NCBI GenBank assembly: GCA_977020255.1
Contig: CDROCS010004085.1
Span: 186,001-250,000, forward strand
Direction: 5' to 3'
Origin: Obrimoposthia wandeli
Taxonomy: Eukaryota
DNA length: 64,000 nt
Below, in pieces: positions 4,467 through 56,869 of this stretch. The notes under the pieces were generated by a model. That model ran no database searches. It worked only from the letters and a program-made list of their open reading frames with translations, and was not told where the DNA came from. Within the stretch, counting starts at the first letter, position 1, and every line of letters starts with the position of its first letter. The position numbers were made by a program, and so were the translations under genes.

Positions 4467-5342
4467 TTATAGTTCAGTTTGTAAAAGTTGTTTTTGCTGC
4501 ATCTTTTTCTCAATCAGAGCAAGCCATACAAGAGGCAATATAATCATTGCTGTGCCAATGAGCATTGCTAGGTCAGGCACTTCATCAAACCATAATAAGC
4601 CCACACCAACAGCGCCTAATAAACCACTATATTCTGCACTGGCAATTTTGTTGCTCTCTGCTGAGCGGTAGGCGATCACGCAGGTTGCCGCATAAATTAA
4701 AATGAATGCACTTGACCCTGCTGCCGTTAATAACGGTGCCCAATCCCAAGGTTGTCCTTCCCATACGGCTAAACCTAATGAAGCAGGCATACCCGCAAGG
4801 TTCGTTAACAATAATGTTTGAGCAACAGTTTGATGAGTAGGCAGTTTTCGGATTAATAAATTATTCGCGGCTAACGTAACGGCAACAACGAGTGCGGCCA
4901 TTGCAGCCCAATTAAACTCTGTCGGCCTTATAACCACTAATACGCCAGCAAAGCCGAGCATACCTGCAGCAACAGAATGTTTAGTGAGCTTTTCACTAAA
5001 AAGCATCATTGCCATCGGTAACATGATTAACGGCGCAGCATAGAAAATGGCATTTGCTGTAGCTAGCGGCATTGAATTAATGGCTATAACCATAAAAATG
5101 GCACCAAAAAGCCAAATGTGAGCCCGTAATACGTGCCATTTCAGCCCATCAATAAAGCTCTTTTTTGATGTAGATAAACAAAATGGAACAAGAATCAAAA
5201 CTGCAGTCAGCTGTCTAAAAAAGACAAACTGAAAAATAGCAGTATCGGCATCCAGTGTTTTAATTAATGCGTCAGAAAAGACAGCCACTAAATTCCCGAC
5301 AATAAGCAGGGTCATGGCAAGACCAACAGATATTTTAGGCAT
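4467..5342 (-). CDS. DMT/EamA-family permease
   Basis: About 10 TM segments in two EamA halves. Start placed at MPKISV (GGAG RBS upstream). Confidence 0.85.
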   Translation of the reverse strand: MPKISVGLAMTLLIVGNLVAVFSDALIKTLDADTAIFQFVFFRQLTAVLILVPFCLSTSKKSFIDGLKWHVLRAHIWLFGAIFMVIAINSMPLATANAIFYAAPLIMLPMAMMLFSEKLTKHSVAAGMLGFAGVLVVIRPTEFNWAAMAALVVAVTLAANNLLIRKLPTHQTVAQTLLLTNLAGMPASLGLAVWEGQPWDWAPLLTAAGSSAFILIYAATCVIAYRSAESNKIASAEYSGLLGAVGVGLLWFDEVPDLAMLIGTAMIILPLVWLALIEKKMQQKQLLQTEL

Positions 5343-5516
5343 AACACGACTCCTTTTTTTGGGGCATGAGGCATTAATGTATAACGGAAATAACGAATAA
5401 ATTGCTTTGAAATTTACGATTATCCGATAGATCACAGAAAGTGATTTTTGGAGGATAGAGAATCTTAAGGATGAAGTATAATGATATAAATTAACTTAGT
5501 ATTAGTTGAGCTAATA

Positions 5517-6410
5517 ATGAAATTACCCCCGTTACGCGCTGTTCAATGCTTTGAGTCTGTTGCGCGTTTTAATAGCTTTTCTAAAGCGGCTGAAGCATTA
5601 CACGTTACCCAAAGTGCGGTTAGCCATCAGGTTAAATTACTTGAAGAATACCTAGGTGAAGACCTTTTTATTCGTCAGGGACGAAGGTTATCGTTAACCG
5701 TTATCGGTGAGCGTTATCAAGAGGAAATCAACTCTGCACTCATTAGTATTTCGCACGCGAGCCAGAAGCTGCGAGAAGGTGAGGATGGTAAAGTCCGCTT
5801 AGCTATTTATAGTACGTTAGCAGTAAAGTGGCTGGTACCTCGATTAGATAATTTACGGCAATTACATCCTGAAATTGACCTTACATTGAATATGGTGGCC
5901 GACGAGCCAGAATGTAGTGATCAAGTGGCAGATTGCTTTGTTACTGCTTACCCACCTTCACGGAATTTTGTTAGTGAATTTCTATATAAAGAGCAGTTAT
6001 ACCCATTTTGTAGCCCTAAACTGTGGTATGAAATGCAAGGAAAGTCGTTACCAGAAGCATTGTGGGAGCAGCCTTTATTATCAGTACGTTCAATCTTTAA
6101 AGATGGCACTGAAAAGAAAGATTGGCGACTATGGTGTGAACTTGGTGGGTTTGAGTTACCAGACGATGTAAAAGTGATTCACTTTAGTCATATGATTTTG
6201 GCTGCTGAAGCGGCGAAGTACCATCAAGGAATCGCCTTTCTTAATGATTACTTTATGACAGATCAAGATCGGCTACAGGATTTAATTAGAATTCCGATGC
6301 ATGATTTACCAACCGGCGATAGTTTGTATTTTGTTTATAAAAAATCCCGAGCCAAACAACCAGGAATTAAAATACTGAGTCAATGGCTAAAACAGCAATG
6401 TTATGAGTAA
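5517..6410 (+). CDS. LysR-family regulator (GcvA-like)
   Basis: LPPLRA...SFSKAAEALHVTQSAVSHQVKLLE helix-turn-helix. Divergent from the DMT gene. Confidence 0.93.
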   Translation: MKLPPLRAVQCFESVARFNSFSKAAEALHVTQSAVSHQVKLLEEYLGEDLFIRQGRRLSLTVIGERYQEEINSALISISHASQKLREGEDGKVRLAIYSTLAVKWLVPRLDNLRQLHPEIDLTLNMVADEPECSDQVADCFVTAYPPSRNFVSEFLYKEQLYPFCSPKLWYEMQGKSLPEALWEQPLLSVRSIFKDGTEKKDWRLWCELGGFELPDDVKVIHFSHMILAAEAAKYHQGIAFLNDYFMTDQDRLQDLIRIPMHDLPTGDSLYFVYKKSRAKQPGIKILSQWLKQQCYE

Positions 6411-6435
6411 TTAAATGGCAGGGGAATTCTACAGA

Positions 6436-6816
6436 TTATTGAATGGCTAATTGAATACGTTCAACATCGATTTTTGTACTGAACCATTCATTAATATGAG
6501 AGTTAAACCACTCTTCATCAATTTCACCTGTAATGGTTATTTTCGTTTCAGGGGTCACTTTAATGCCATGCCACTTGTCGTTGTCGATTTCTACCGAAAT
6601 ATTGTCTTGGCCATCGGAGAATGTATACATCTCGTTGCCTAAAGAGGCTGTGATATAGCCTGTCAGGGTAACGGGTTGGTCATCTTTCCCTTCTTTCGCC
6701 GCTTTTACTGAGGTTTCACTCGGCCCGAAGAAACCCTGATCGTTCAAGCCATTAGTATTGGCGAATGTTATTGGAGAAAGAATAAGAAGGCTAGATAGTA
6801 AAAGTGCTTTTTTCAT
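6436..6816 (-). CDS. Periplasmic bacterial OB-fold (YgiW/YdeI-like) protein
   Basis: Signal peptide, GFFGP, VTLTGYI...YTFSDG...VEID...GEID pattern. Confidence 0.85.
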   Translation of the reverse strand: MKKALLLSSLLILSPITFANTNGLNDQGFFGPSETSVKAAKEGKDDQPVTLTGYITASLGNEMYTFSDGQDNISVEIDNDKWHGIKVTPETKITITGEIDEEWFNSHINEWFSTKIDVERIQLAIQ

Positions 6817-7063
6817 TTTTATACTTATTGAGTCGGAATAGGTGAATTAATGATGTGAAGTATAAAGGACCGAAAATGAACACTGAATGAACGTACTATA
6901 TTGGTAGGAAATAGAGAGACCAATAGTCGGTATGCATCTTAATAAATTGTTGTTAAATGTAAAATTTCAATACTATTAGCCAAAAAATATCGAGTACCTT
7001 GTTAGCGCAGAGTAAAAGTACGCTGTGATTGGTGGATTCTTGAACGGTTGATCAGGCGTGCTA

Positions 7064-7092
7064 TTTACAGTCTCAATTGTTATACGTATTAT
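7064..7092 (+). promoter_or_regulatory. Sigma70 stable-RNA promoter of tRNA-Ser
   Basis: TTTACA-N17-TATTAT followed by GC-rich discriminator tcaccgcg. Confidence 0.75.
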
Positions 7093-7102
7093 TCACCGCG
7101 TT

Positions 7103-7193
7103 GGAGAGATGGCTGAGTGGTCGAAAGCACTGGTCTTGAAAACCAGCAAGGGTTTATAGCCCTTCTAGGGTTCAAATCCCTATCTCTCCGCCA
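7103..7193 (+). tRNA. tRNA-Ser (anticodon TGA), copy 1
   Basis: GGAGAGA/TCTCTCC acceptor stem, anticodon arm CTGGT-CT-TGA-AA-ACCAG, long variable arm, GGTTCAAATCC T arm, encoded CCA. Confidence 0.97.
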
Positions 7194-7385
7194 CATTCAA
7201 AGAAGCCGCTACATTGTTAGCGGCTTTTTTACGTCTAGATTTTACCCAATAAGATAGGGATGCAGAATCCTAGACAGGGTTCACCTGAGCGAAGCGAAAG
7301 CACATTGCCCGTACCGAAGGTGCGAAAAAGGCAATAGCCCGAAGGGTGCGAGCTTGCGAGTAAATAAATCCCTATCTCTCCGCCA
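7194..7385 (+). repeat. tRNA-linked repeat module A, copy 1 (192 bp, ends in a 20-bp copy of the tRNA 3' end)
   Basis: Starts with terminator aagccgcta...tagcggcttttt. Ends in AAATCCCTATCTCTCCGCCA (7366-7385 = 7174-7193). Near-identical to 46431-46620. Confidence 0.9.
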
Positions 7386-7402
7386 CATTTAGAAAAGGGC
7401 GA

Positions 7403-7452
7403 GTGGTAAGAGGAATTTGTTCCAAATCCGCCTTACCCAGAACACTCCGCCA
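7403..7452 (+). repeat. 50-bp direct repeat B, left copy
   Basis: 46/50 identical to 8986-9035. Hairpin-forming and ends in CTCCGCCA. Confidence 0.9.
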
Positions 7453-7457
7453 GATAC

Positions 7458-7486
7458 AAAAAGGCCAGCAGAAATGCTGGCCTTTT
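7458..7486. terminator. Bidirectional intrinsic terminator
   Basis: aaaaaggccagca-gaaa-tgctggcctttt. Confidence 0.85.
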
Positions 7487-7502
7487 GATTTTTGAGTGGC
7501 AA

Positions 7503-8696
7503 TTAAGCCAGCATGATGTTGGCGATCATTGCCGATAGAATGCTGACCAAAGTCGAGCCATACAGTAAGCGTAAGCCGAAGCGGGCAACCATATTACCTT
7601 TCTCTTCGTTGACCCCTTTAACAGCACCCGCAATGATACCAATTGAGCTGAAGTTAGCGAAAGACACCAAGAAGATGGAAATTGTACCGACTGTATGTGC
7701 AGAAAGGCTGCCCAACTGATCTTGTAATGCCATCATTGCCACAAATTCGTTTGAGACTAATTTAGTCGCCATGATGCTACCGGCTTGCAAGGCTTCGTTG
7801 GCAGGAATTCCCATTAGCCATGCAATCGGGTAGAACGCATAACCGATCAGATCTTGGAAGCTAATACCGAAGGCGTAGGTGAAACCTGCGTTGATCATGG
7901 CTATGAGCGAGATAAAACCAATCAGCATTGCAGCGACAATTACCGCGACTTTAAATCCCGTAAGAATATATTCGCCGAGCATTTCAAAAAACGTAAGTTT
8001 TTCAATTGATTCATCGGCCATCATATCGTCAAAGCTTACTTCTGCCTCATGATCATAAGGGTTAATGATCGACAGAATAATAAAGGTGCTGAACATGTTC
8101 AAAAATAATGCGGCCACTACAAATTTAGGAGCGATGAGCTGCATGTATGAACCGACTATCGACATAGATACTGTAGACATAGCTGTGGCTGCTAATGTGT
8201 ACATACGGCGCTCTGACATACGGCCCAAAATGTCTTTATAAGTGATGAAGTTTTCTGATTGACCAACCATTAATGCGCTGATGGCGTTAAATGACTCAAG
8301 TTTACCCATGCCGTTAATTTTAGAGAGTAAGTAGCCAATTGCACTAATTACCACGGGCAGCACTTTAATGTGCTGTAAAATACCAATAAGGGCCGAAATA
8401 AAGACAATGGGCATTAATACTTGCAGGAAGAAATCGAAGCCACCTTCATTGACTAATCCGCCAAAGACAAAGTTTGTACCTTCAGCTGCGAATGCCATTA
8501 GGCCATTAAAACCGCCTGCAAATTCGGCGATAATGCCTGTTCCAGTTGAAGAATTCAGTAAGAAATAAGCGACACCCATTTCAATCACGAGAAGCTGAAT
8601 AATATAGCGAAGTTTAATGCTCTTGCGATCTTTGCTGACCAATAAGGCAAGGGCAGCAACGACAGCAAGGCCAAAAATAAAGTGTAAGTAAGGCAT
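7503..8696 (-). CDS. nupC: CNT-family nucleoside:cation symporter
   Basis: [10 protein letters not shown]...GQSENF and [31 protein letters not shown] closely follow NupC. Confidence 0.92.
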
Positions 8697-8985
8697 AATA
8701 GATGTGTACCAATGGTGATTGTTATCAAACTATTTATGTATGCTACATATTCTGTTGCTTAAATATAGTGATGCTAATCTCGTTTTTTATTCAATTTGTA
8801 CTCAGCAAAAGGGCCGATAACCAAATGTGTTGAAAAAAAAGGTATGTTATTTTAAGTGCTTGGAGAGGTAATAAACACAAGTGTTAATAGTGAAATCTAA
8901 CTTTTATAAAGCGGTAGCTTTTTGTTGTAGTGGTATGCGTTTAGCGCGTCACTACGCCGCGTAAAGAATGTTGATTTCGGCGCAT

Positions 8986-9035
8986 GTGGTAAGAGGGATT
9001 TGTTCCAAATCCGTCTTACCCAGAACACTCCATCA
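8986..9035 (+). repeat. 50-bp direct repeat B, right copy
   Basis: Direct repeat of 7403-7452. Confidence 0.9.
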
Positions 9036-9163
9036 TATTTAAAGAAGCCGCTACTCTGTTAGCGGTTTTTTTACATCTGGATTTTACCCAATAAGATAGG
9101 GATGCAGAATTCTAGACTGGGTTCACCTGAGCGAAGTGAAAGCACATTGCCCGTACCGAAGGT
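9036..9163 (+). repeat. Truncated tRNA-linked module A, copy 2 (no tRNA)
   Basis: Aligns to 7194-7321 (aaagaagccgcta...gatagggatgcagaat...gggttcacctgagcgaag...cccgtaccgaaggt), then diverges. Confidence 0.88.
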
Positions 9164-9266
9164 TTGCGCAATGTAGTTACAAACTGATAATTGATCAAAA
9201 TAAGGGCATATAAGAACCAAACAATTAAGCAGATTTCTATATTGGTATCAGAGTACCAAATAAAAT

Positions 9267-9280
9267 TTGATCATTATCAA
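9267..9280. promoter_or_regulatory. FNR-type binding site
   Basis: TTGAT-CATT-ATCAA, a perfect match to the TTGAT-N4-ATCAA consensus, just upstream of the TPR-rdh operon. Confidence 0.75.
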
Positions 9281-9310
9281 TAACTAATAGGAAGGGAGAT
9301 TATCTATCGG

Positions 9311-10498
9311 TTGAGGGTATTTTTTGACCTTTTAACCACTTTATTTGTACGTACCATAGCATTATTCAAAATGATTTGGTGTAACGACATGATGGATACA
9401 AAGTGGCTAGAACTCTATCAATACCTTCAGGAAAAAACTGGCGGATTTTTATATGAGGGTAATATCGAAGATAGCCTGAATTATAAATATAACTTTATTA
9501 AAAGTCAGTTTAGTACTGTAAATAGCAATGTGGATGAAAATAAGAATGACTGGTTAGAACATGAAGCATTCACCGCTTTTTTTAGCGATATTATTCGTCG
9601 TGGAAGTTTGTCGTTAAACCAGCTCGATACCACTTATAACATCTTAATGTCGGCTAAGTTATGTCAGCTTGCGCTGGCGGTTATTAATCATTTTCGAACT
9701 CAGTTATCTAATGATGAATTTAGTTTAAAGGCTGGACTTATCTATCAACAGTTAGGGGATCATGAACATGCCCGAGCAATGTTTGAAGATGGAATAAAGT
9801 CTAACCCTAATAATTACATGTGTTTTAACCACCTTGGTTTTAATCACATCTATACCGGTGAAAATGCGGCGGCAATCGAGATGTTTAAGCAGGTTATTGC
9901 GCTTGCACCTGAATTATCGGGCGGTTATCAAAATTTAGCGGGCTGTTATTACCAAGATAGTGAATTTAAACAAGCGGCTAACTATTGTGAAAAAGTGTTC
10001 ACTTTGGACAAAACGATTGTAGCGACTTACATCACTGCGATCAGTGCGTATTTAGCACTTAAAAATACAGAAGAAGCAGATCGCTGGATCCAACTATCAA
10101 TTGATAATGAAATTACATCCATGGAACTGGTTCGATTAAGTGGTATTTCAGCGCTTCAATGTCAACGCTATGAAGAAGCCACTGCCGCCTTCAACCATTA
10201 CCTCAGTAATACCCCTGACTCTTACGATGTGTTGCATTTAAGAATAAAAGCTCAAATTGGTGCCCATCAGTGGAGCGTATTAGAGCCCGATTTGAAATGC
10301 CTATTGGTGTTTGATCCACATGACAGCGAGCTACTTGAGCAGCTTTTTCTTACCTATTACCACACCAAACAGTGGTTAGATGCTGAATGTGTAATGGCTG
10401 AGCTTAACAAACTATCAACGCACTATAGCAGTACTTATCGCGACCAAATAAATGAGATCAGACAGCAAAATAGTATTGCTGTAAGTGTAATTAGCTAG
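9311..10498 (+). CDS. Tetratricopeptide-repeat protein (start uncertain; ATG at 9371, 9389 or 9392 possible)
   Basis: Repeated TPR-like helices (AGLIYQQLG...A...F; LGFNHIYTG...A...F; LAGCYYQ...A...C). Ends 15 nt before rdhA. Confidence 0.8.
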   Translation: MRVFFDLLTTLFVRTIALFKMIWCNDMMDTKWLELYQYLQEKTGGFLYEGNIEDSLNYKYNFIKSQFSTVNSNVDENKNDWLEHEAFTAFFSDIIRRGSLSLNQLDTTYNILMSAKLCQLALAVINHFRTQLSNDEFSLKAGLIYQQLGDHEHARAMFEDGIKSNPNNYMCFNHLGFNHIYTGENAAAIEMFKQVIALAPELSGGYQNLAGCYYQDSEFKQAANYCEKVFTLDKTIVATYITAISAYLALKNTEEADRWIQLSIDNEITSMELVRLSGISALQCQRYEEATAAFNHYLSNTPDSYDVLHLRIKAQIGAHQWSVLEPDLKCLLVFDPHDSELLEQLFLTYYHTKQWLDAECVMAELNKLSTHYSSTYRDQINEIRQQNSIAVSVIS

Positions 10499-10513
10499 TA
10501 TTGGGGAGCAACA

Positions 10514-12034
10514 GTGAAATCTAAAAATAGCACAATAGAAGGTGCAGATAACCCTTCGCGCCGTAATTTTCTAAAGATGGGAGGTGTAGCCGCTGCAGCG
10601 GTTACTGTTGGTGCATCGGCAGGCGCTGGTTTTGCTCTTGGCCGCGATCCCGATGCCAATGTGGGGTATGGCCGAACGGAAGCGGGTAAAGACATGTTCT
10701 TTAATCGTGAACCTTTCCGGGTTGATAGCGCGCCAACGTTAGAAGTGGCAGGCAAACTGGTACGTCCTGAGTGGAGTGATTTCTTATTTCACCGTACTGG
10801 CGTGCTTTCAACATTAATGAAAGGTGGCTGGATCCCCACGCCCGATTGGAAAGCCATTCCGGATGCACGAATAAGAGAGTATTACTCGCGCTATCCAGAA
10901 CGTTGGGATGACATGTACCAATCCTTTAGTGAAAAAGTGAAGCATGATCAAAATGTCGAAAAGCACCGTGATCAATTTGCCCTTGGTTGGGCCCATTCGG
11001 CTGCCTTTATGCGTGGGCTGTACAGTAATTTCCCACCAAAGCCAAACGGTCATCCAGATGAAGTGGATTTTCAATGGGTAAAAAGGGAACAGCAGGAATT
11101 TAAATCGCCCCAACATGCCTCTGATTTGATCAAAAAAATGGCGTTTAAATTTGGTATGAGCATTGTCGGGATCACTAAAATGGATCCCAATTTTGTGTTT
11201 AAAAATACCATGCGCGGAATGCCTGAGTGGGATGAGTCGATTCCCAAGCACTGGAAAAATGTCATTGTTTTTGGTACGCCGATGAACTGGGATCCAATGT
11301 ATGCGGCGATTGGCTATTCTACCTCGTATGATGGTTATTTTAGAGCCAAAAATGCAGCTGGTTTGATGGCCGCTTATTTAGGTGAGCTTGGCTATGCTGC
11401 GCGACCTCAATGGCCAGGTTCTGATTACGAGATCATTGTGCCACCACTTGCTATTCAAGCGGGTATGGGGGAAGCAGCGCGCAACGGTATTTTACTAACG
11501 CCAGAGCTGGGGCCAAATATTCGATTAGCGGCGGTGATCACCGATCTTGATCTTGAAGCCGATAAACCTATCAATACTAAAGTACAGCACTTTTGTGAAG
11601 AGTGTAAGATTTGCGCTGATTCGTGCCCAAGTGGATCGATTAGCCATGCCGATAAACCAGATGCAGTGGTTCGTGGTTATCGTAAGTTTGCCTTTAACCA
11701 AGATGGCTGTTGGAAGCTATGGCGCCAAGGGCCAACTGAAACGGGGATGGGCTGTCGTGTGTGTATTGCAGTTTGTCCTTATACCCGTAAAAACAACTGG
11801 ATACACGCGTTGGTGAAAGAAGCGGATCCGCGAGACCCTACCGGCGCTACACGTAAAGCGCTGCTAGCGATGCAGCATAACTTCTTTTATTACCCCGATG
11901 CAGAAGCGTTTCACGGTGATTGGAATGGCGGGCGATTTGCTGGCTATCACCAGCCACCAGAATGGTTACGTAGTGAAAATTATTTGAAAGTCACCAAAAC
12001 TTGGGAATATGACGGAAACTGGGAGGGATTTTAA
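10514..12034 (+). CDS. rdhA: Reductive dehalogenase catalytic subunit (Tat-exported, corrinoid/2x[4Fe-4S])
   Basis: Tat motif SRRNFLK; GMGEAARNG...PELGPNIRLAAVITDL...DKP; Fe-S motifs CEECKICADSCP and C-X14-CRVCIAVCP. GTG start with GGGGAG RBS. Confidence 0.9.
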   Translation: MKSKNSTIEGADNPSRRNFLKMGGVAAAAVTVGASAGAGFALGRDPDANVGYGRTEAGKDMFFNREPFRVDSAPTLEVAGKLVRPEWSDFLFHRTGVLSTLMKGGWIPTPDWKAIPDARIREYYSRYPERWDDMYQSFSEKVKHDQNVEKHRDQFALGWAHSAAFMRGLYSNFPPKPNGHPDEVDFQWVKREQQEFKSPQHASDLIKKMAFKFGMSIVGITKMDPNFVFKNTMRGMPEWDESIPKHWKNVIVFGTPMNWDPMYAAIGYSTSYDGYFRAKNAAGLMAAYLGELGYAARPQWPGSDYEIIVPPLAIQAGMGEAARNGILLTPELGPNIRLAAVITDLDLEADKPINTKVQHFCEECKICADSCPSGSISHADKPDAVVRGYRKFAFNQDGCWKLWRQGPTETGMGCRVCIAVCPYTRKNNWIHALVKEADPRDPTGATRKALLAMQHNFFYYPDAEAFHGDWNGGRFAGYHQPPEWLRSENYLKVTKTWEYDGNWEGF

Positions 12035-12360
12035 TGTTTCCACAATCAACGGTATTAGACCCGCTATTTTGGATGGGATTAGGCGCACTGCAAATATTAG
12101 TGTTTGCTGGTGCAAATCAATGGGCTAAAGAATATCAGCTGGGAATGAAGGGTTGGAAATGGTGCTTAGTCGGTGGTTGGTGGTTCTCGATGATGTTGAC
12201 CATTGCTGGTGCATTTACCTTATTGGGTGAGAACGAAGGCTTAGCTGGCTGGTATTTACTCGGTTTTGCGGGAACGCTGCTAATCATTGCTGGTGCATTG
12301 TTATTACGGCTTTTGATTGCAATGAAACCGAAGGATATAAGCATTAACATTAGTGAATAA
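12034..12360 (+). CDS. rdhB: RdhB-like membrane anchor
   Basis: 108 aa, three hydrophobic segments, Trp-rich WKW/WWF. TAATG overlap with rdhA. Confidence 0.8.
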   Translation: MFPQSTVLDPLFWMGLGALQILVFAGANQWAKEYQLGMKGWKWCLVGGWWFSMMLTIAGAFTLLGENEGLAGWYLLGFAGTLLIIAGALLLRLLIAMKPKDISINISE

Positions 12361-12400
12361 GGTATATCCCCGTATTGTCATAATACGGGGATAATAAAAT

Positions 12401-13645
12401 ATGATGAAAAAAACGTCTTCGAAATCAAAATCAAAAGTATTTGATAAGTTTATTAGTGTACTTTCAATCTTACTGTTTGCCGTCTTTTGGTATTTAGGGG
12501 GGGATCGGAGTCAACATAATCAACAGGCTCAATTATCCTATTTAACCCTTCAATCGGAGCAACTTGAACCAGCAGGATCTAATACCTTCCAAGGTGTGGT
12601 GCGAAGTGATAATGAAAGTAACGTAGTTGAATGGATAAGTGTTGGAAGCGGTATTGGCTATGGCGGCGAGATGGTCGCTGGCATTAATATTTCACCAACG
12701 GGCACATTACAAGCACTGGCAATTATTGATTCAAAAGAGACTTCAACCTATTTAGACAAAGTCATGCAGAGTGGGGTCGCTGACCATATTTTAGGTCAAC
12801 CTATTGATACCACCGTCACGTTTGATAGCGTGACGGGCGCGACCTTAACTTCAACGGCCTTGATGGATGCGGTTGAGCATGCTGCAAAGCCTGTTCGTAA
12901 GCAAATCTACGGCTATACCTTGTCTGAGTCGAAAAGTATTTTTTCTTCGCTGCAGTGGTTAGACTTAGCCGCATTCGTCTTTTTTGGTGTCGCGGTGTGG
13001 GCGAGCAGAACCCGAAATAAAAAGAAAGTGATGATCAATTGGGTCGTGCTTATTATCTCAATGGGGGTATTCGGTTTTTATTCAGCAACGCTATATACCG
13101 CATCCACGATGAGTATGGTGATTTCTGGTGCTTGGCTATATGGTCTCGCGAATTACACGCCTTTAATCTTGATCCTATTAAGCATCGTATACATATTGTA
13201 TTACAACCGAAATGTCTATTGTCAGAATATCTGTCCTTTCGGTGCGGTGCAGCAATGCCTAGCGAAGGTCGGTAATGCAAAATCCTCCACTATCAAAAAC
13301 GAATTTTTGTTGTGGTTCCCTCGCGTATTATTACTGACTACATTGTGCCTTGGCGCATACTTCCGTAATCCGGTCGCATTTTCTTACGAGCCGTTTGGTA
13401 TTATGTTTGGCATGATTGGGACGATGTACCTTTTTGTTCTGACAATCGTTATTTTATTAACATCATTGGTGGTTCGTCGACCGTGGTGTCAGACGTTATG
13501 CCCAATTAATGCGATGACTGACTTTTTGACGTTCAATAAATCATGGTTTAAACAGGTACAAAAAAAACGAGCAAAACAACACCGTCAACAACGAAAGCAA
13601 ACTGAAGATGGTCAATGCCAGAGCAAGACTGGAGGACGTGAGTGA
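12401..13645 (+). CDS. rdhC: RdhC-like (NosR/NirI-related) FMN-binding membrane protein
   Basis: N-terminal TM, flavinylation motif DSVTGATLTS, multi-TM domain, two CX3CP motifs (CQNICP, CQTLCP). Confidence 0.82.
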   Translation: MMKKTSSKSKSKVFDKFISVLSILLFAVFWYLGGDRSQHNQQAQLSYLTLQSEQLEPAGSNTFQGVVRSDNESNVVEWISVGSGIGYGGEMVAGINISPTGTLQALAIIDSKETSTYLDKVMQSGVADHILGQPIDTTVTFDSVTGATLTSTALMDAVEHAAKPVRKQIYGYTLSESKSIFSSLQWLDLAAFVFFGVAVWASRTRNKKKVMINWVVLIISMGVFGFYSATLYTASTMSMVISGAWLYGLANYTPLILILLSIVYILYYNRNVYCQNICPFGAVQQCLAKVGNAKSSTIKNEFLLWFPRVLLLTTLCLGAYFRNPVAFSYEPFGIMFGMIGTMYLFVLTIVILLTSLVVRRPWCQTLCPINAMTDFLTFNKSWFKQVQKKRAKQHRQQRKQTEDGQCQSKTGGRE

Positions 13646-13854
13646 TGAGAAAAACGCTAGTTTATGTTTTTTACTGCGTTTCAACGGTATTGATTCTTGC
13701 CCACTTGTGGGGAAGTGTTGTGACACAACGTACCCTTGCTAAGCAAAATAAGCCGCTGTACATCTTCAGTATTGAGGTAGAAGCAACCATCGAACCTGAT
13801 ATCGAGATTGATTACCAAAAAGTCGCAACAGAGTTATCAGAGCTGAACTATTAA
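13645..13854 (+). CDS. Small single-TM hypothetical protein
   Basis: GGAGGA RBS, TGATG coupling to rdhC, N-terminal hydrophobic helix, acidic tail. Confidence 0.65.
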   Translation: MRKTLVYVFYCVSTVLILAHLWGSVVTQRTLAKQNKPLYIFSIEVEATIEPDIEIDYQKVATELSELNY

Positions 13855-13882
13855 GTTATTGATGACATTAGGAAGGATACCT

Positions 13883-13907
13883 AAGAGGCATGGGTTGCCT
13901 CTTTTTT
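13883..13907 (+). terminator. Intrinsic terminator closing the rdh operon
   Basis: aagaggca-tgggt-tgcctctt followed by a T run. Confidence 0.75.
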
Positions 13908-13913
13908 ATTAGG

Positions 13914-14804
13914 ATGATCGTGATAAATAAAGATATTCCCGCAGTATTGCTCAACGATGTGAGTGTTAATTTAGAGCTTTCTTTTAACACTATCGCGACG
14001 TTCTACCAGCAACGAGATCAGCTCTATATCGGTAAACCACACCGTTTACGGTTTAGCGCCTTGGTTTATATAACTCAGGGGGAGGGCTATCATTTTATTG
14101 ATTACAAAAGGTATCAATTAAAGCCAGGTACACTGCTCACTTTGGGTAAGCATCAAGTCCATCATTTTTCTGAACATTGCAGCGTAGAAGGCTACGTCAT
14201 TTCTTTTAGTAATGAGTTTTTACACTCGGGAGGCGACGATCCCTACCAAGAAGTAATGGCAACTGCGGTTGAAGAAGTTAATTGTATTACTGAAACAGCA
14301 GATAACCTCGGTGGTTTATTTGACCAGATTTCTCAAGAGTACCACCGTGAAGGTAGTAGCTATAAAGATGAAATTATTCGAAATTTAATGCGTGCTCTTA
14401 TGCTAAAAGAAATTGTACCTAACTATCAAGCGTTGTGTAATAACACCAGTTTGTGTCAAAAGGATATTAATTATCACGCATTAAAAAAGTATATCGAAAA
14501 AGTCTTTAGTCAACGTCCTTCCGTCGGGGGGTTGGCAAAAACAATGGGTAAAAGTATCAAACAGCTTGATAAAATTGCGAAAGATTATTCAGGTCGCAGT
14601 GTTAAAGAGTTAATTGATGACAGAGTCTTGCTTGAGGCAAAACGCTTGTTGGCCTTTAGCCAGCATTCAATACTGGATATCTCGCTGCAGCTCGGATTTA
14701 AAGAGGCAACGAATATGACCAAATTTTTCAGACGCCATACCAGTTTGACGCCGAAAGATTTTAGAGATCTCTGTCGAACCAATGTTGCAAAAAGGGTTGG
14801 CTAA
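13914..14804 (+). CDS. AraC-family transcriptional regulator
   Basis: N-terminal cupin-like sensor (PHRLRF...GEGYHFID) and C-terminal double HTH (LEAKRLL...ISLQLGFKEATNMTKFFRR). Start adjusted to ATG 13914. Confidence 0.9.
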   Translation: MIVINKDIPAVLLNDVSVNLELSFNTIATFYQQRDQLYIGKPHRLRFSALVYITQGEGYHFIDYKRYQLKPGTLLTLGKHQVHHFSEHCSVEGYVISFSNEFLHSGGDDPYQEVMATAVEEVNCITETADNLGGLFDQISQEYHREGSSYKDEIIRNLMRALMLKEIVPNYQALCNNTSLCQKDINYHALKKYIEKVFSQRPSVGGLAKTMGKSIKQLDKIAKDYSGRSVKELIDDRVLLEAKRLLAFSQHSILDISLQLGFKEATNMTKFFRRHTSLTPKDFRDLCRTNVAKRVG

Positions 14805-14930
14805 CCAGTAGCATCGCTGAAAATCAATAATGGTCTCTTTTGTTATTCTTAGTTGGTGATGATGAGCCTGCATGCAATTGTTATCTTAATAATTTGAAGC
14901 ATCCACAATGAGGCTCATAGCTCCATCTCA

Positions 14931-16118
14931 TTAGTTAAAAGCACGTACCAAGCTACCGTGGCCGTAATAGTGGTAGTTGCCAGATATCTCTTCAATAAAG
15001 ACTGATTCTCCCGTTGTTAATACTAGTGTAGTGTCATGTGTGTATACCGTGATCTCACCTTGTAAGCAGAACAAGATTTCGGCACTGCGCACGTATTCCA
15101 CTTGTTGTTCATCCACAGCGGTTAGTACTTCAAATTTAAAGTCATCAACGGGTACAGAGTAGGTCAGCTTGTTGCCGCGAAGAAGCGGCGTTGTTTTGAG
15201 TGCAGAGTAAGGAATGGGTTCAAAGCGTGTATTTCGAATCAACTCATCGACGTCTACATGTTTTGGGGTTAAGCCAACACGTAGTACGTTATCTGAATTG
15301 GCCATGATTTCGATACCTGTGCCTTTCACGTAGGCATGTGGCGTTTCGGCGTGTAAGAACATGGCTTCGCCTGCTTGCAGTTCAATAATATTCAACAATA
15401 GCGGAGCAAACAAACCAACATCTTCGGGGTAATCATGGGCAAATTCTTGAATCATAGAAAATGCTTCACGTCCTGTTTGGCTACATCCTTTTTGTGCAAT
15501 GTTATCCATTAACTGTTTTATAGCTGTGGTTTTCTGTTCACCGTACAATGACACGACAAAGCGAAAGAATTCCGACAATTCGATAGGAGTAGGGTTTGCT
15601 TTCAAGCGCGCTAGTTCCTGGTTGAATATGTTGCATTGTGCCTGCTCGAACAGTGTCACTATATCGCTGATTACACGAAAACCATTTAATGCTAAGTAAT
15701 TAGTGATGGCATACACTAATTCCGGCTTGTGGTTCGCATCTTTGTAATTACGCTCTGGGGCATCTAATGGGATGCCTTCGGCATTTTCGCGAGCAAACCC
15801 TTGCTCTGCTCTTCTTTTTTCAGGATGCACTTGAATTGATAATGGTTTTTCTGCAGATAGTACTTTTAGAAGATATGGCAGTTCACCAAACTTGTCATAA
15901 GTATAACGACCAATGATTTTCTCAGGTTCTGCCTCAATTAAGTCTGATAACAATTGGCTGTCCCCGTTATTTACCACTCGCGAACAGCCGTTAGGGTGTG
16001 CACCCATCCACATTTCAGCGAGAGGTTGCTGGCTAGGATTATTGATCCCAAACAAGGTGCTCATTGCCGTTGTGCTGCCCCACGCGTAATTTTGAATCAC
16101 ATTGCCCAGTTTAAACAT
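14931..16118 (-). CDS. manA: Mannose-6-phosphate isomerase, type I
   Basis: QNYAWGS, AEMWMGAHP, LSIQVHP, NHKPE, HAY, EIMANSDNVLR motifs. Confidence 0.96.
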   Translation of the reverse strand: MFKLGNVIQNYAWGSTTAMSTLFGINNPSQQPLAEMWMGAHPNGCSRVVNNGDSQLLSDLIEAEPEKIIGRYTYDKFGELPYLLKVLSAEKPLSIQVHPEKRRAEQGFARENAEGIPLDAPERNYKDANHKPELVYAITNYLALNGFRVISDIVTLFEQAQCNIFNQELARLKANPTPIELSEFFRFVVSLYGEQKTTAIKQLMDNIAQKGCSQTGREAFSMIQEFAHDYPEDVGLFAPLLLNIIELQAGEAMFLHAETPHAYVKGTGIEIMANSDNVLRVGLTPKHVDVDELIRNTRFEPIPYSALKTTPLLRGNKLTYSVPVDDFKFEVLTAVDEQQVEYVRSAEILFCLQGEITVYTHDTTLVLTTGESVFIEEISGNYHYYGHGSLVRAFN

Positions 16119-16259
16119 TTACATCTACCTATTTGACACTATTTTTTGGGTAAAAAATTGCCGAGCCTAAGCCCGGCAGAAATCGGAAATCGTATTTACT
16201 TTGAAAATATGGTTATACGTTATGGTCATACGTCATTGTTATACTGCTATTACTTTGGG

Positions 16260-18899
16260 CTAGAAGCGCACGCGGAATGTCTTAGCCTGACATTGCCCCA
16301 GTTCGCCAAATTGACTATTTACTGGTGCAGAGTCAGCTAGAACAACTTCATCCATTTGTGTTTCGACCCACTCTGTGACTGCGCGGTTAAAACGCACACT
16401 ATCAATTACAGCTTCACTTTCTGATGGGTTGTATACACGTAGAATCAACGCGTCTTCATCTTCTGCCTTTTTCAACACACTTAGCACAGCGCCATGCATA
16501 TCTTTTTCAAGCAGCGAATACGTCATTGGCAAATCTTGCTCGCCCACGTTCAATTTCATAGCGTTGTATGGAATTTTGTTGTAACAGTGAATTGGCGTTA
16601 CATAGTCACGAGCATTTTGCATCACGTTTGCCGTAATGTGGTCACCTTTAAATCCAAACAAACCGAAGCGACATACTAGCTTGCCACGCATTTGCGAATC
16701 TGGTGTAGGTACCTTGATGCCTGACGGACGACCCGGACGTAACAATAATTCTTCTTTGCCTAATACACCGATTGAACGGAATAGTGTTAAAGCAATAGTA
16801 TCTTTTTCGTCATTACCTTTCGATGAAATGATTTCAAACTCACGCAGACCATTGGTGAATACAGCCATGCCTTGCTTGCCATCTTCCAACGCAGCAAAGT
16901 TCATCAATTGCCATACAGGGACTGGTGCTTCTTTCCAGCCATCTTTTTCCCAATTTTCCATCTCTGCATCGTTCACTGAACGGGTGATCACACCGAATTG
17001 GTTATCAGACAAGCAAGTTTCAGACACATAAGGTGTAGGGATCAGCACGCGTACACGGTGGTCATCAGCTTGGTTATCTAGCACCATTTCTATGTCAATA
17101 CGGTGACTGCCAGTTTTTAACGTTACGCGACATTCCACGTCTATATGGGCGTCTTGTAATTTGGCTTCGCGTGCAGCTAGGTTTTCAGGTAATGCCATGC
17201 GATAGCGAATGGTTGCCGTGCTTTGGAAAGCGTCATGCTGAATGCTAATGTCGTTTTTAACGTCGGTTGAATACAACAACCACTCTTGACGTGATGGTGA
17301 GTAATCATACTCATCACCGTCATCTGAACCTTCTTCCACTTTTAGTACTTGGTCGTATGTTTTCTGTGCGGCTTTGTCGAAAATTGACAAGGTGCCGTTA
17401 GCGTTTACGGTCACAGTGTAGAATTCATTTTCTAAATCTGCGTCTCTATGTTCAACCGTAGCTAATTTTCCAGTTTCTTTTCCTTCAATATGTAAAGTGG
17501 TGAACCCCATTGCTGGTATGGTCGGTTTTAATTGGATATCAAATTCCATGAACGGGTCGTAGTTACCGTAGTGTACGATTTGACGATCAACTTGACCTGG
17601 GTCGATTTCACGCTTGTCTTGGATGAAGTATTCGACGTTATTACCGTGTTCATCGGTAATTGCAAATTCTTGAGCACGAATACGAATTGTAGTATTCACT
17701 ACTTCTTCGCGGGCATACGGTGCCAAATTGAAGAATGCTAACTTGTCGCAGCCTTCTTTGGCTGGCATGTGATCGACAATTTTACGTTTGTAGAAGTTGA
17801 TCAGGTTTTCAGCCATGTCATCAGCCAAGGTATAACGGTTTAAAATTTCCGCATGTACCTTATCGCTACAACAACAACCGATACTGTCGTGAGCATGGTT
17901 TTTCATGCTTTCTTTCCACATTTTCTCGATCAAACCATGGTGATATTCAAAACCAAACGACCATGCAATTGCAGCCAACGGTTCTAGAACATTCACAATC
18001 TTGTTTTCAATTTCAGCGTGGATTAGTTTAATGTCCATACGCGTTGATGAAATGGTACGGTGCACACGCATGTACTTACCGTCGTTGAATTCACCTTTCA
18101 CCACATCCAGTTGATCACGTACTGCTTCAATACGCTCGAACACATCTTCATAACGGCTCATGTGGAATTCACGGTCAGGGTAGACTTCGCGCAGTTTATC
18201 CATGACTTCAAAAATATCTTGTTGAATCGGCATCTGGTCGTGACCGTTAGGCAACAAAATATCTTTAGTGACAGATGGCTTTTCTAATACAGGAAAATAT
18301 TTATCTAGACGTGCGCGTAGGCCGGCTTCGTCTTGTGGTAGGTATTTACCAATGGCATAGCCTAGCGGCAATACTTGTGCGGTTACTTCACTGCCGTCGT
18401 TGCTCTGCCATAAAAATTCTGTTTTGTTCGTGCCATGACGCTCAGAACAACCACGCCAGAACATGGCACGATTGATACCAAAACCGTTATAAATCATCGG
18501 TAGCTGTGAGCTCATAGAGAATGAATCTGGTAAGTAACCGATCTTCATTGGCTCACCAAATTTTAAACAATCACGAATACCATACATCATGTTACGTACG
18601 ATGGACTCACCAGAAACCTGCATGGTATCGGTTTGTGAATACCATGGACCAATTATCAACTTGCCTGCTTGAACTAATTCACGTACACGCGATTCATGTT
18701 CAGGTTTAATTGCGAAATAATCTTCCAGTACGGCCGTTTGACCATCAAGTACATAGAATTTGTATTCTGGGTCTGACTCCAGACGAGTCATGATTTCTTC
18801 CATGTTATTGACGAGCAGAATTCGCGATTCTTCCGTGGTGAAATACCATTCACGATCCCAGTGCATGTGTGGAGTAATATGAACGCGAGATGTAGCCAT
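16260..18899 (-). CDS. mngB: GH38 alpha-mannosidase / mannosylglycerate(-6-P) hydrolase
   Basis: [35 protein letters not shown]38 motifs. Context with the PTS and GntR genes. Confidence 0.92.
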
Positions 18900-19006
18900 A
18901 ATAATGTACCTGATTAATTGTCTTACTTTGTCGAGCGCAGTAACCCCGCACTCGACAAATTGAGAGTGTCAGCAATGAAGTGACGTAAAGTTAAATTTGT
19001 TTGAAA

Positions 19007-20956
19007 TTACGCGTCAGCGGTCACTTTAAAGGTCCCCTTTTTTGCAGCATGGGCCCTCCAACTGATCAGTATTGCGGTAGAGATAACGGCACCAATTATG
19101 GCCGCGCCCAACCAGATTCCAGCTGCCATGAAGCTACCAATGCCAGCATCATGCAGAAGGAACATCGAGAAAATACCTGCCCCTGGTGTTGATAGACCAA
19201 TACCCGCAGCACCAACAATGGAACCCGTTACCATCGATCCCACAAGGAAAGAGCCAATCACTCGCACAGGATCTTCAATGGCCATTGGAATCGCACCTTC
19301 GGTGATCCCCGCAAGACCAAGTAGCCAAGTGGATTTACCCGTTTCAATTTCAAAATCTTTAAATAGACGAGGTGCTATCATCGTCGATGCTGTTACGGTG
19401 AACGCCGATACCATTTTCACCGAACCAAAAATTGCATAAGGACCGTATACGCCGTTTGCCATAGCCCCTAAACAGAAAGCATAAGCAGCTTTGTTTACTG
19501 GGCCACCCAAGTCGAATGACACGAAAATACCGATGACTGCACCAAGTAGCAGTGCATTAGACCCCGACAAGCCATTCAACCAATCTGTTAGGCCTTGGTT
19601 TAGAAGGGCAACTGGCTTACCAATCACAAACAGCATTAAGCTACCGACTACTAAGGTACCAAGTACTGGATATAGGTAGAAGGTTAGGAAACCGTTGAAG
19701 GTTGGGCTTAGGCGAATGTTTTCTTTCACCCAACGCATGAAGTAACCAGCAAGCAAGCCACCAACTACACCACCAAGGAAACCAGAGCCAATCATATTGG
19801 CAGCCAAGCCTGCGGCAAAACCGGGACCTAACGCGGGTTTATCAGCTAACGAGAACGCAGTATATGCGGCTAATACTGGCACCATTAAGGTTCCCAACAT
19901 GCCACCGCCGAGTTTGCGATACATCCATAGCCATGAATTTTCTGTGCTGTAAACGTCTTGTAGATTAAATATTTGAGCAATAAGAACGGCGACAGCCAGT
20001 ACTGTACCGCCTGCAACAATGAGCGGCACAGCGAACGAAATACCGCTAAGCAGGGCTTGTTTTAATTCGGTTTTTAGTGGCATTCGCTTTGGTTTATCAT
20101 CGATTGCGACTTTACGTTCGGCACCACTACCGTTTTTTGCTGCTGTCAGTGCATCACTCAAAATACGCTCAGCGTGGCGAATTGGCTCAGCCACAGGGGT
20201 TTCAATACGTGGAATACCGTCAAAACGTTCAATTTCTTTGATTGCAACTTCAGCTGCAAACACACACGCGTCGGCCTTGTTTAATTGTTCAGCCGTTAAG
20301 CGACCTTCAATGCCGTTAGCACCTTGTTTTTCAACATGCACATTGATACCAAGCTTCTTACCTGCTTTTTCAAGGTATTCGGCGGCCATGTAGGTGTGGG
20401 CTATTCCTGCCGGACAAGCTGTTACACAAACAATAGTTGGCTGATCATTATGTTGATTTGTATTGTTATTTGTATCTAAGTCTTGTTGTTCGTCATCATT
20501 GCTGTCTAATAAAGCCATGACTTCAGCAGTTGTTGTTGCCTGTAATACAGCATTACGAATGTCATCATCGACTAATGTTGTGGTTAATGCCGTTAACAAA
20601 TGCATATGGGTTGAACCCGCTTCCGCATTAGGAATAGCAATCAGGAAAACTAAGTTAACATCTTCATCTTCGTCTTCATCAATACCTTTCCATTTAAGGT
20701 CACGCTTCAATGTTGCAACAGCGAACCCTGCTTCTTTTACCGCATCTGTTTTACCATGCGGTACAGCCAGACCTTCACCAAGGGCTGTTGGCCCTTGTTC
20801 TTCACGTTTAAATACCGCGTCAAGATAGGCTTGCTTATCATACAACTTTCCTTGTTGATCTAGTTGATCAGCAAGCGCGTGGATGGCTTCTTCTCTACTC
20901 TCAAATTGAGTTTGTAATGAGATGAGCGCCTTATTGGTTAGGGTCGTCAGTTTCAT
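19007..20956 (-). CDS. mngA: Fructose-family PTS IIABC, mannosylglycerate-type
   Basis: IIA AVPHGK, IIB ACPAGIAHTYMAAE, IIC DLGGPVNKAAY and GITEGAIP motifs. Confidence 0.9.
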   Translation of the reverse strand: MKLTTLTNKALISLQTQFESREEAIHALADQLDQQGKLYDKQAYLDAVFKREEQGPTALGEGLAVPHGKTDAVKEAGFAVATLKRDLKWKGIDEDEDEDVNLVFLIAIPNAEAGSTHMHLLTALTTTLVDDDIRNAVLQATTTAEVMALLDSNDDEQQDLDTNNNTNQHNDQPTIVCVTACPAGIAHTYMAAEYLEKAGKKLGINVHVEKQGANGIEGRLTAEQLNKADACVFAAEVAIKEIERFDGIPRIETPVAEPIRHAERILSDALTAAKNGSGAERKVAIDDKPKRMPLKTELKQALLSGISFAVPLIVAGGTVLAVAVLIAQIFNLQDVYSTENSWLWMYRKLGGGMLGTLMVPVLAAYTAFSLADKPALGPGFAAGLAANMIGSGFLGGVVGGLLAGYFMRWVKENIRLSPTFNGFLTFYLYPVLGTLVVGSLMLFVIGKPVALLNQGLTDWLNGLSGSNALLLGAVIGIFVSFDLGGPVNKAAYAFCLGAMANGVYGPYAIFGSVKMVSAFTVTASTMIAPRLFKDFEIETGKSTWLLGLAGITEGAIPMAIEDPVRVIGSFLVGSMVTGSIVGAAGIGLSTPGAGIFSMFLLHDAGIGSFMAAGIWLGAAIIGAVISTAILISWRAHAAKKGTFKVTADA

Positions 20957-21044
20957 TGTTTCCCTCGATACCGTCGTTCACAGTGTTATTGGTTGGCTAA
21001 TTTTGTTTTAATACAAATATAATACCAATTAGCCAGATAACATC

Positions 21045-21060
21045 CGTGATCGTTCTCACA
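21045..21060. promoter_or_regulatory. CRP-type site upstream of mngA
   Basis: CGTGA-N6-TCACA, 9/10 match to TGTGA-N6-TCACA. Confidence 0.65.
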
Positions 21061-21292
21061 TGAATCGCAGAATATGTATTAAAGTTGTATTGTTGTGCGC
21101 GTGATGACGATCTTACAACTTTATTTCAAATTTCAAAAAATGTATTATGAATCTATCTGCACGAGGTGCTGACATGCTTTGGTTCAATTCTGTCAGCAAC
21201 AGCAAAATAGACTCGGTAGATTCGTTCAACACTTTTAACTGTATTAACTATATGACTGTATTTTATGCTTTGCGCAGTCAGAGGAGAACGAT

Positions 21293-22015: not shown

Positions 22016-22094
22016 TTATCATTTCTCTATAGACAGCATTTCCATGCGTTTTGATGACTTAAAGAGGCTTACCAATGTGGTATTGGTGGTTTAT

Positions 22095-34592: not shown

Positions 34593-34777
34593 TCGTCTCG
34601 CTCTGTTGTTCAGGGTTATTAATGCAGCAATAAGTAAAAGTTAAACCCTAAGATACATTTGCTTTCAGTTTTTGTCCTCAGTGTTTCCCTTAGCTTCACG
34701 TAACATTTAATAATTCAACTTCTTGGCAATATCGCAACTCTGCGAATTTTTTAATGAATTTTTATAAGGGACATATT

Positions 34778-56858: not shown

Positions 56859-56869
56859 TGCACTTCTTA

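Follow-up and report, generated by a model that had tools for sequence, protein, structure and literature searches.

Does a compact group of five genes in a marine bacterial contig encode a complete respiratory reductive dehalogenase? This question is raised by positions 9389-13854 of a 64,000-nucleotide stretch of contig CDROCS010004085.1 (assembly GCA_977020255.1, deposited for Obrimoposthia wandeli; the whole stretch is called the window hereafter), where a tetratricopeptide repeat (TPR) gene, rdhA, rdhB, rdhC and a small open reading frame (ORF), orf69, follow one another on the same strand with minimal spacing. Our analysis suggests, with a probability that we put at roughly 70%, that these genes give a psychrophilic Photobacterium a functional reductive dehalogenase that depends on a corrinoid, is bound to the membrane and belongs to the quinol-dependent respiratory type. 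An original prediction, made from the letters of the DNA, had described a tightly coupled unit of these five genes closed by a terminator, a twin-arginine leader and two [4Fe-4S] motifs in RdhA, a three-helix membrane anchor in RdhB, and a TGAT flavinylation motif with two CX3CP motifs in RdhC, and each of these elements was recovered (Table 1).

Family, active site and fold of RdhA

On the NCBIfam model for reductive dehalogenases, TIGR02486 (curated cut-off 160.35), RdhA scored 160.3 bits with E 1e-46, and a search of PDB sequences returned Desulfitobacterium hafniense PceA, Nitratireductor pacificus NpRdhA and Sulfurospirillum multivorans PceA at 106-115 bits (E ~1e-32), with QueG at 44 bits. 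These matches were complemented by a structural comparison, in which an AlphaFold model of RdhA (built on a 23-sequence alignment; mean predicted local distance difference test score 65, core mostly >70) was searched against the PDB with Foldseek. The top 36 matches were all reductive dehalogenases (PceA and NpRdhA, E 7e-17 to 2e-13), about 25% identical to RdhA, and QueG came next at E 8e-8. Clustering with QueG, which the original prediction had named among the outcomes that would refute it, appeared in none of the hidden Markov model (HMM), PDB or Foldseek scores. Assignment of RdhA to QueG was ruled out by its 51.8 bits on the QueG model TIGR00276 (cut-off 200), by its twin-arginine translocation (Tat) signal and by its length of 506 aa, compared with ~380 aa for the cytoplasmic QueG.

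The Tat signal consists of the motif RRNFLK at residues 16-21 and a hydrophobic stretch at 24-42, and the Pfam TAT_signal model scored 26.8 bits against a cut-off of 22.7. The first [4Fe-4S] motif is CEECKICADSCP at residues 361-372 (CX2CX2CX3CP type) and the second is C399-X14-C414-X2-C417-X3-C421-P; the cysteines of both, including C399 and C414, are invariant in 23 RdhA homologues (alignment A1). The long CX14C spacing singled out in the original prediction is present, exceeding the X10 of PceA and the X12 of NpRdhA by 2-4 residues, but it is a clade-wide trait and no anomaly. HMMER alignments to 4UQU and 4RAS placed Y275 on Y246 of S. multivorans PceA and Y426 of NpRdhA, and R337 on R305 and K488, respectively; both residues are invariant across the 23 homologues, and the catalytic role of such a Tyr and Arg/Lys pair has been described (PMC10624902). 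After correction of a 48-residue numbering offset, the menaquinone-head residues K489, H495 and R499 of D. hafniense PceA, as seen in the PceA2B2 cryo-EM structure, aligned with R425, H431 and K435 of RdhA. The N-terminal third had no match to characterised dehalogenases in Pfam or in the HMMER alignments. Taken together, these features identify RdhA as a genuine reductive dehalogenase homologue with a predicted respiratory (Tat, RdhB and RdhC) architecture.

Membrane partners and the rdhB-rdhC junction

Hydropathy analysis of RdhB revealed three hydrophobic segments, two of which pass the threshold while the middle one is W/G-rich. An EXE motif, whose meaning in RdhB has been discussed elsewhere (PMC10624902), is formed by E66-N-E68 in the loop between the second and third segments. 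Because a PDB search with RdhB gave no match to PceB (a single chance match had E 0.11), its identification relied on gene position, membrane topology, the EXE motif and comparison with related loci, nearly all of which, including those of Desulfoluna and Desulfuromusa, carry an RdhB homologue directly downstream of rdhA.

RdhC contains TGATLT at residue 145, CQNICP at 274 and CQTLCP at 363, six hydrophobic segments and a Lys-rich N-terminus. Its Pfam content is FMN_bind plus two Fer4_5 domains and nothing else, and the NCBIfam NapH and NosR models matched only weakly. According to Buttet et al. 2018 (PMC5928378), RdhC is defined by [S/T]G[A/S]TX[S/T], two CX3CP motifs and about six transmembrane helices, and by exclusion of the C-terminal [4Fe-4S] motifs of NapH and NosR; the protein described here falls within that definition. 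Its sequence identifies it as a NosR/NapH-like membrane flavoprotein, with a predicted periplasmic FMN-binding domain and a predicted six-helix module.

Between rdhB and rdhC lies a stem-loop with a computed RNA folding energy of -18 kcal/mol. A strong hairpin, different in sequence each time, occupies this junction in all ten gammaproteobacterial loci compared and is absent from both deltaproteobacterial loci checked. This element is probably a partial terminator or mRNA stabiliser that sets the rdhAB:rdhC ratio, a role that fits the observation that pceAB transcripts and proteins far exceed pceC in Desulfitobacterium (PMC10624902).

The PceA2B2 complex of D. hafniense (PDB 8Q4H; operon pceABCT) shares with this locus a Tat-exported RdhA, two Fe-S clusters, the catalytic Tyr/Arg pair, a three-helix RdhB with EXE, the quinone-head residues and a following gene for the RdhC flavoprotein. 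The two systems differ in that PceA is only ~26-30% identical to RdhA, over the C-terminal 200 residues, with an N-terminal domain that is not recognisably alike, and in that D. hafniense has the trigger-factor chaperone PceT, for which there is no counterpart here. Moreover, PceA acts on chloroethenes, whereas the substrate here is probably an aromatic bromide.

Distribution and phylogeny of the cassette

A tblastn survey compared 80 related loci kept from the genome scan. The full cassette, TPR-rdhA-rdhB-rdhC-(small ORF)-AraC, the last being a gene for an AraC-family regulator, was found in Photobacterium, Thaumasiovibrio, Vibrio, Enterovibrio, Psychromonas, Shewanella and Endozoicomonas, while the rdhABC core alone reaches Desulfobacterota, Deferribacterota, Bacteroidota, Chloroflexota and others. 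An RdhA homologue (E <= 1e-60) is present in 48 of the 401 sampled Vibrionaceae species genomes, about 31 of these having at least 81% identity, so that the genes are far commoner than the "few" marine Gammaproteobacteria to which the original prediction had assigned them. In the Endozoicomonas atrinae locus (5829-12046) a tandem second rdhAB pair lies upstream of the TPR gene, and two Shewanella loci (~4930-6218) have, close by and on the other strand, an extra rdhA-like gene that is divergent, with 32-33% identity.

The classical rdh accessory set, namely the trigger-factor chaperone RdhT and the CRP/FNR regulator RdhK, is absent here, and a TPR protein and an AraC-family regulator flank the core instead. 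Domain searches among the window's ORFs of at least 120 aa found no trigger-factor, CRP/FNR-type, ApbE or corrinoid gene, in agreement with the original prediction. The accessory set that it had called atypical is, however, standard for a widespread gammaproteobacterial clade, and the AraC-family regulator, missing from the gene list given then, is part of the conserved cassette.

Clusters of this kind are not new in themselves. Buttet et al. 2018 (PMC5928378) counted RdhC sequences from Photobacterium (11), Vibrio (16) and Ferrimonas (10) and proposed the three genera as candidate new organohalide respirers. Those clusters represent the same kind of locus; as far as the available text goes, the paper treats RdhC, gives no physiology for these genera and does not include the TPR gene, the AraC regulator, an FNR box, an operator block or the internal hairpin. 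Since Photobacterium and Vibrio clusters are thus already in print, the novelty of the locus has been overrated. Our full-text literature searches returned no description of the TPR, AraC, FNR or hairpin features. What was known before is the occurrence of rdh clusters in Vibrionaceae, and what is new here is the conserved cassette with its FNR box, promoter block and hairpin.

The closest RdhA proteins are those of Photobacterium frigidiphilum and P. indicum (98% each). In a maximum-likelihood tree, the gammaproteobacterial RdhAs form one clade (support 100), whose sister clade includes those of Halodesulfovibrio marinisediminis, Desulfuromusa kysingii and Desulfoluna spongiiphila; the joint clade also has support 100. 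Placement relative to PceA, CprA, VcrA and other characterised RdhAs comes not from this tree but from HMM, PDB and fold scores only. The sister loci, namely the "clade 5" loci of marine Deltaproteobacteria (Liu & Haggblom 2018; H. marinisediminis and D. kysingii) and one rdhABC cluster of D. spongiiphila, share with the present locus the order rdhA-rdhB-rdhC and the marine habitat, at full-length identities of 47-48% for RdhA, 44-45% for RdhB and 28-29% for RdhC. They differ from it in lacking the TPR gene, the small ORF, the AraC regulator and the rdhB-rdhC hairpin, with a sigma-54 activator instead in Desulfoluna, and their hosts are strictly anaerobic, some of them making corrinoids de novo.

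Functional information on the sister clade comes mainly from H. marinisediminis, whose RdhA is 48% identical over 96% of the query. This organism has a single RdhA gene, which is induced up to 400-fold by 2,6-dibromophenol, and like D. kysingii it uses bromophenols, though not 2,6-dichlorophenol, for respiration (Liu & Haggblom, PMC6299228). The D. kysingii homologue sits on scaffold 10, which fits its likely identity with the induced "RDase A10" of that study, and the Desulfoluna homologue, because of the sigma-54 activator upstream, is rdhA1 or rdhA3 of Peng et al. The 47-48% identity to bromophenol-linked RdhAs suggests, without proving, the substrate class. Another Shewanella enzyme probably lies outside the gammaproteobacterial clade: the PceA of S. 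sediminis, a species absent among the 80 loci kept. This enzyme reportedly dechlorinates tetrachloroethene without growth coupling.

The degree of conservation raises the question of whether the enzyme acts on halogenated compounds at all. Between genera, RdhA is 82-90% identical while neighbouring proteins reach ~45-50% (for Photobacterium versus Vibrio or Enterovibrio, ~85% and ~50%), which hints at one fixed, widespread substrate. Such a substrate could be a non-halogenated compound, reduced in the periplasm by corrinoid chemistry with no carbon-halogen cleavage; the unmatched N-terminal third of RdhA would be compatible with this, as would the inclusion in the family of QueG, which is no dehalogenase. 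We consider it quite improbable, since the dehalogenase-specific Tyr/Arg pair is retained, QueG models score far lower and the sister clade is tied to bromophenol respiration, so that reductive dehalogenation remains the preferred function.

The stretch is also represented in metagenomes from cold seeps, ice, sediments and invertebrate guts, one cold-seep run having the complete operon on a single contig at ~98% identity. Four short contigs of a marine-sediment metatranscriptome fall on the promoter region, rdhA, rdhB and rdhC, which is suggestive only.

Promoter, regulator and accessory genes

Upstream of the operon, a perfect FNR-type box (TTGATCATTATCAA) can be read directly. At an equal distance from the start codon, the box is perfect or has one mismatch in six other Vibrionaceae loci and is perfect in Psychromonas; it was not found at that position in the Shewanella or Endozoicomonas loci. 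The upstream regions of 11 loci from four gammaproteobacterial families were then compared (alignment A2), and their mean column identity was 50%, with an invariant ACCTTTT inside a nearly invariant promoter block. The consensus of this block, which lies downstream of the FNR box, is ATTTCTACCATTTT-GGG-N-TTTT-NN-ACCTTTTGACCA. The spacing of the candidate -35 and -10 hexamers is ambiguous, so the sequence does not fix a transcription start.

The regulator that follows the operon combines the Pfam domains AraC_binding (a cupin ligand-binding domain) and HTH_18, and its best NCBIfam match is HpaA, the 4-hydroxyphenylacetate sensor, at 98 bits, which is below the cut-off. An AraC-family gene occupies this place in all ten related gammaproteobacterial loci, and the protein is a putative organohalide or phenolic sensor of the cassette. 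Tandem sites that overlap the -35 region are typical of AraC-family activators. The promoter block likewise overlaps the putative -35 region, and because the AraC-family gene is the sole regulator that travels with the cassette, we infer that the block is a putative operator of the linked protein. From the conserved FNR box, the tandem operator-like block and the HpaA-like regulator, a dual control is proposed, in which FNR would convey anoxia and the AraC protein would respond to an aromatic or halogenated inducer. Rfam searches of the operon and its surroundings found neither a riboswitch nor any other known RNA.

For the TPR protein, 11 orthologues concur on a start at ATG 9389 (M-[M/I]-x-x-K-W-L), and no signal peptide was detected from this conserved start. 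Several Pfam TPR families match the protein, Protein Atlas gave generic TPR clusters only, and the conserved motifs are DWLEHEAF and GGYQNLAGCYYQ. The gene stands directly upstream of rdhA in ten related gammaproteobacterial loci, at 40-95% identity. A complex prediction with full-length RdhA scored 0.00, which counts neither for nor against binding. The protein may be an RdhA maturation or Tat-proofreading factor that replaces RdhT, a guess made from its position. At the other end of the operon, the 69-aa ORF is kept after rdhC in seven related loci; its conserved parts are a helix of the form MRK...FVFY...LILAHL and, at the C-terminus, the motif EIDYK, and it had no match in Pfam, NCBIfam or Protein Atlas. 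This product is a conserved, predicted single-pass membrane protein, apparently translationally coupled to rdhC.

Table 1. Features of the rdh locus, numbered from the first letter of the window
Feature	Position	Strand	Remarks
FNR-type box TTGATCATTATCAA	9267-9280	+	centre 115 nt upstream of TPR start codon
Conserved promoter block (putative operator)	9293-9339	+	two similar elements ~21 bp apart, TTATCTATCGG... and TTTGACCTTTTAACC
TPR gene	9389-10498	+	369 aa from conserved ATG; program ORF begins at TTG 9311
rdhA	10514-12034	+	506 aa; GTG start, GGGGAG 7 nt upstream
rdhB	12034-12360	+	108 aa; 1-nt overlap with rdhA stop
rdhB-rdhC stem-loop	12365-12393	+	perfect 13-bp stem
rdhC	12401-13645	+	414 aa
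Small ORF (orf69)	13645-13854	+	69 aa; overlaps rdhC stop
Intrinsic terminator	13883-13910	+	stem 13883-13903 of 8 bp, 4 GC pairs; then TTTTATT
AraC-family regulator gene	13890-14804	+	likely start ATG 13914

Host and cofactor supply

The source assembly (1.35 Gb in 6,912 contigs) contains many different bacteria, and the contig that carries the window is from Photobacterium and measures 550 kb. The DNA of the locus, from nupC to the AraC gene inclusive, is 95% identical to that of P. indicum ATCC 19614, and we place the host in the P. indicum / P. frigidiphilum group of psychrophilic Photobacterium. Because the assembly mixes many organisms, presence or absence of a gene in it cannot be assigned to this bacterium, and P. 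indicum with two other close genomes served as proxies for cofactor genes. P. indicum contains btuB (691 bits), cobS and menA and gave no match for cbiC, a marker of de novo synthesis; both other close genomes have a full-length BtuB-like gene. The occurrence of btuB and cobS without cbiC, together with menA, points to cobamide uptake or salvage and menaquinone synthesis, and the cobamide is probably taken up or salvaged by the host, not made de novo.

Beyond the window, where the original prediction had proposed a search for btuB, cob and apbE genes, the outcome was mixed. A cobS locus occurs on another contig of the assembly (88% identity in a DNA search), and ApbE gave 39 matches there, some with in-frame stops, including a gene on the same contig as the window, 25 kb outside it; relatives have the usual 340-aa ApbE. 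Searching the assembly at the DNA level with the btuB locus of close relatives gave no close copy, which, given the mixed and fragmented nature of the assembly, is not evidence of absence. Near the same-contig ApbE gene (C4085:268000-277500, segment 4262-8284), a 1,003-aa fusion of an old yellow enzyme-type FMN oxidoreductase with FMN_bind and FAD_binding_2 domains, preceded by an AraC-type regulator, comes just before the ApbE gene; we take this fusion to resemble the cytoplasmic NADH:acrylate/cinnamate-type reductases of Vibrio. Elsewhere, the assembly contains separate QueG-sized homologues and a second RdhA-like open frame (C1484:35291-36013; 450 aa, 32% identical over residues 199-443).

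The missing btuB locus, the tRNA-Ser-related repeats that the cassette adjoins and a neighbouring gene content that differs from P. indicum might suggest a horizontally acquired cassette that is out of use and decaying. We judge this very improbable, as all five genes and the regulator are intact, promoter elements are kept across families, and a homologue is retained in the Vibrionaceae species counted above. This view is further reinforced by the ratios of nonsynonymous to synonymous substitution (dN/dS) relative to P. indicum, which are 0.057 for rdhA, 0.076 for rdhB and 0.108 for the TPR gene, that is, 0.06-0.11 for the main genes. The small ORF has a ratio of 0.34, and rdhC was left out owing to an indel.

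Proposed mechanism, substrate and weight of the evidence

Under the proposed scheme, transcription would start from a promoter that requires anoxia through the FNR box and probably also an aromatic or halogenated inducer, sensed by the AraC/HpaA-like regulator at its tandem operator. In the cytoplasm, apo-RdhA would be loaded with a cobamide and two [4Fe-4S] clusters, a step in which the TPR protein, also cytoplasmic, may do the work of the RdhT chaperone that is lacking here, before the protein is exported by Tat, for which the signal is present. RdhA would then dock on RdhB, where the EXE loop and R425, H431 and K435 resemble, by alignment, the menaquinol pocket of PceA2B2, so that electrons could pass from menaquinol to the Fe-S clusters and on to the cobamide, with Y275 and R337 expected to protonate and stabilise the leaving aryl group. 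RdhC, presumably made in lower amount through the action of the rdhB-rdhC hairpin and flavinylated by a periplasmic ApbE on T148, the second Thr of TGAT, may aid electron input or maturation.

Among possible substrates, natural phenolics that are ortho-brominated or iodinated are the most likely, because 2,6-dibromophenol induces the nearest functionally linked relatives and the regulator is similar to a sensor of hydroxyphenylacetate. A comparable case is NpRdhA (PDB 4RAS, 6ZY1), which is alike in its score (115 bits) and catalytic Tyr, and whose substrate class, brominated hydroxy-aromatic acids, fits the HpaA-like regulator found here. Unlike the present protein, NpRdhA is cytoplasmic, carries a fused NAD(P)H reductase module, is without Tat, RdhB and RdhC, and has Lys where RdhA has Arg.

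Both the substrate and the choice of respiration over detoxification are matters that we infer. An enzyme of this kind could dehalogenate for detoxification or co-metabolism only, dealing with toxic bromophenolics in sediments or invertebrate guts and supporting no growth, as might be expected of a host that is versatile, facultatively anaerobic and able to use many other electron acceptors, and of a cassette whose inducer-type AraC regulator is typical of catabolic or stress operons. The tetrachloroethene dechlorination reported for S. sediminis PceA, which was not coupled to growth, points the same way. This appears unlikely to us, because Tat, the RdhB EXE motif, the quinone-pocket residues and RdhC match an energy-conserving menaquinol:organohalide oxidoreductase, the FNR box fits a respiratory regulon, and organisms of the sister clade gain growth yield from 2,6-dibromophenol (PMC6299228). 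Respiratory dehalogenation thus remains the reading that we prefer.

Several observations weigh against it and should be set beside the estimate given at the outset. RdhA falls 0.05 bit below the TIGR02486 cut-off, the Pfam N-terminal dehalogenase domain was not detected in it, and its model is only of moderate quality, the N-terminal 82 residues and the C-terminal region being poorly modelled. The nearest functionally linked enzyme is 48% identical, far under the 90% identity to a biochemically characterised RdhA that marks an orthologue group, so the substrate is a guess, and full-text literature searches found no measured activity for any member of the gammaproteobacterial clade, Vibrionaceae included. 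The roles proposed for the TPR protein, the AraC regulator and the hairpin are deduced solely from conserved position. As to cofactors and expression, the btuB result in the mixed assembly has been described above, the ApbE gene on the same contig may serve only the cytoplasmic fused flavoprotein encoded beside it, and the metatranscriptome contigs may come from contaminating DNA.

Wider implications

Work on organohalide respiration has been confined almost entirely to bacteria that grow slowly, are strictly anaerobic and are hard to manipulate genetically. A broader proposal, advanced tentatively and with slightly less than an even chance of being right, is that facultatively anaerobic marine Gammaproteobacteria (Vibrionaceae, Shewanella, Psychromonas and Endozoicomonas) share a mobile, self-contained organohalide-respiration cassette with FNR control, a co-transferred AraC/HpaA-like activator that senses the organohalide and acts at the tandem operator, a TPR protein in place of RdhT and a ratio-setting hairpin. 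To our knowledge, this type of regulator is not known for rdh operons. If the proposal is true, roughly one Vibrionaceae species in ten would be an organohalide respirer that has gone unrecognised, is easy to culture, lends itself to genetics and feeds on bromophenolics from invertebrates and algae, and a common group of marine heterotrophs would take part in the natural cycling of bromine and iodine in seeps, cold sediments and the guts of animals. Should the system work in fast-growing Photobacterium or Vibrio, it would offer a convenient host in which to express and dissect reductive dehalogenases, a direct route to test the disputed role of RdhC and possibly a new regulator type for organohalide biosensors. 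The present result consists of an annotation with testable regulatory predictions, and it represents an experimental opportunity more than a surprise.

Other features of the window

Two copies of tRNA-Ser(TGA) with equal scores lie at 7103-7193 and 46340-46430, and repeats of the tRNA-Ser 3' flank occur at 7186-7300, 8980-9142 and 46423-46537. The repeat that carries a terminator-like hairpin at 9048-9070 sits just upstream of the rdh promoter, and in P. indicum a full tRNA-Ser copy stands between nupC and the cassette; these repeats may mark recombination or island borders. After the AraC gene, a 7.3 kb mannoside-utilisation block (14835-22116), absent from the syntenic P. indicum locus, encodes a mannose-6-phosphate isomerase, an 879-aa alpha-mannosidase-like ORF, a phosphotransferase system EIIA/IIB component and a GntR/UTRA regulator.

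A full-length match to the cspA mRNA thermoregulator at 34597-35038 (116.7 bits) fits a cold-adapted host. A group II intron (Rfam D1-D4 and domain V/VI matches) occupies 50010-52122, with an intact reverse transcriptase/maturase ORF at 50498-52012. On the minus strand, 53161-63872 contains an aryl-polyene-like lipid/pigment cluster with two ketosynthases, a ketoreductase, an ApeP dehydratase, a DUF3261 protein, an MMPL transporter, a LolA-like protein, an aromatic amino acid ammonia-lyase and an acyltransferase.

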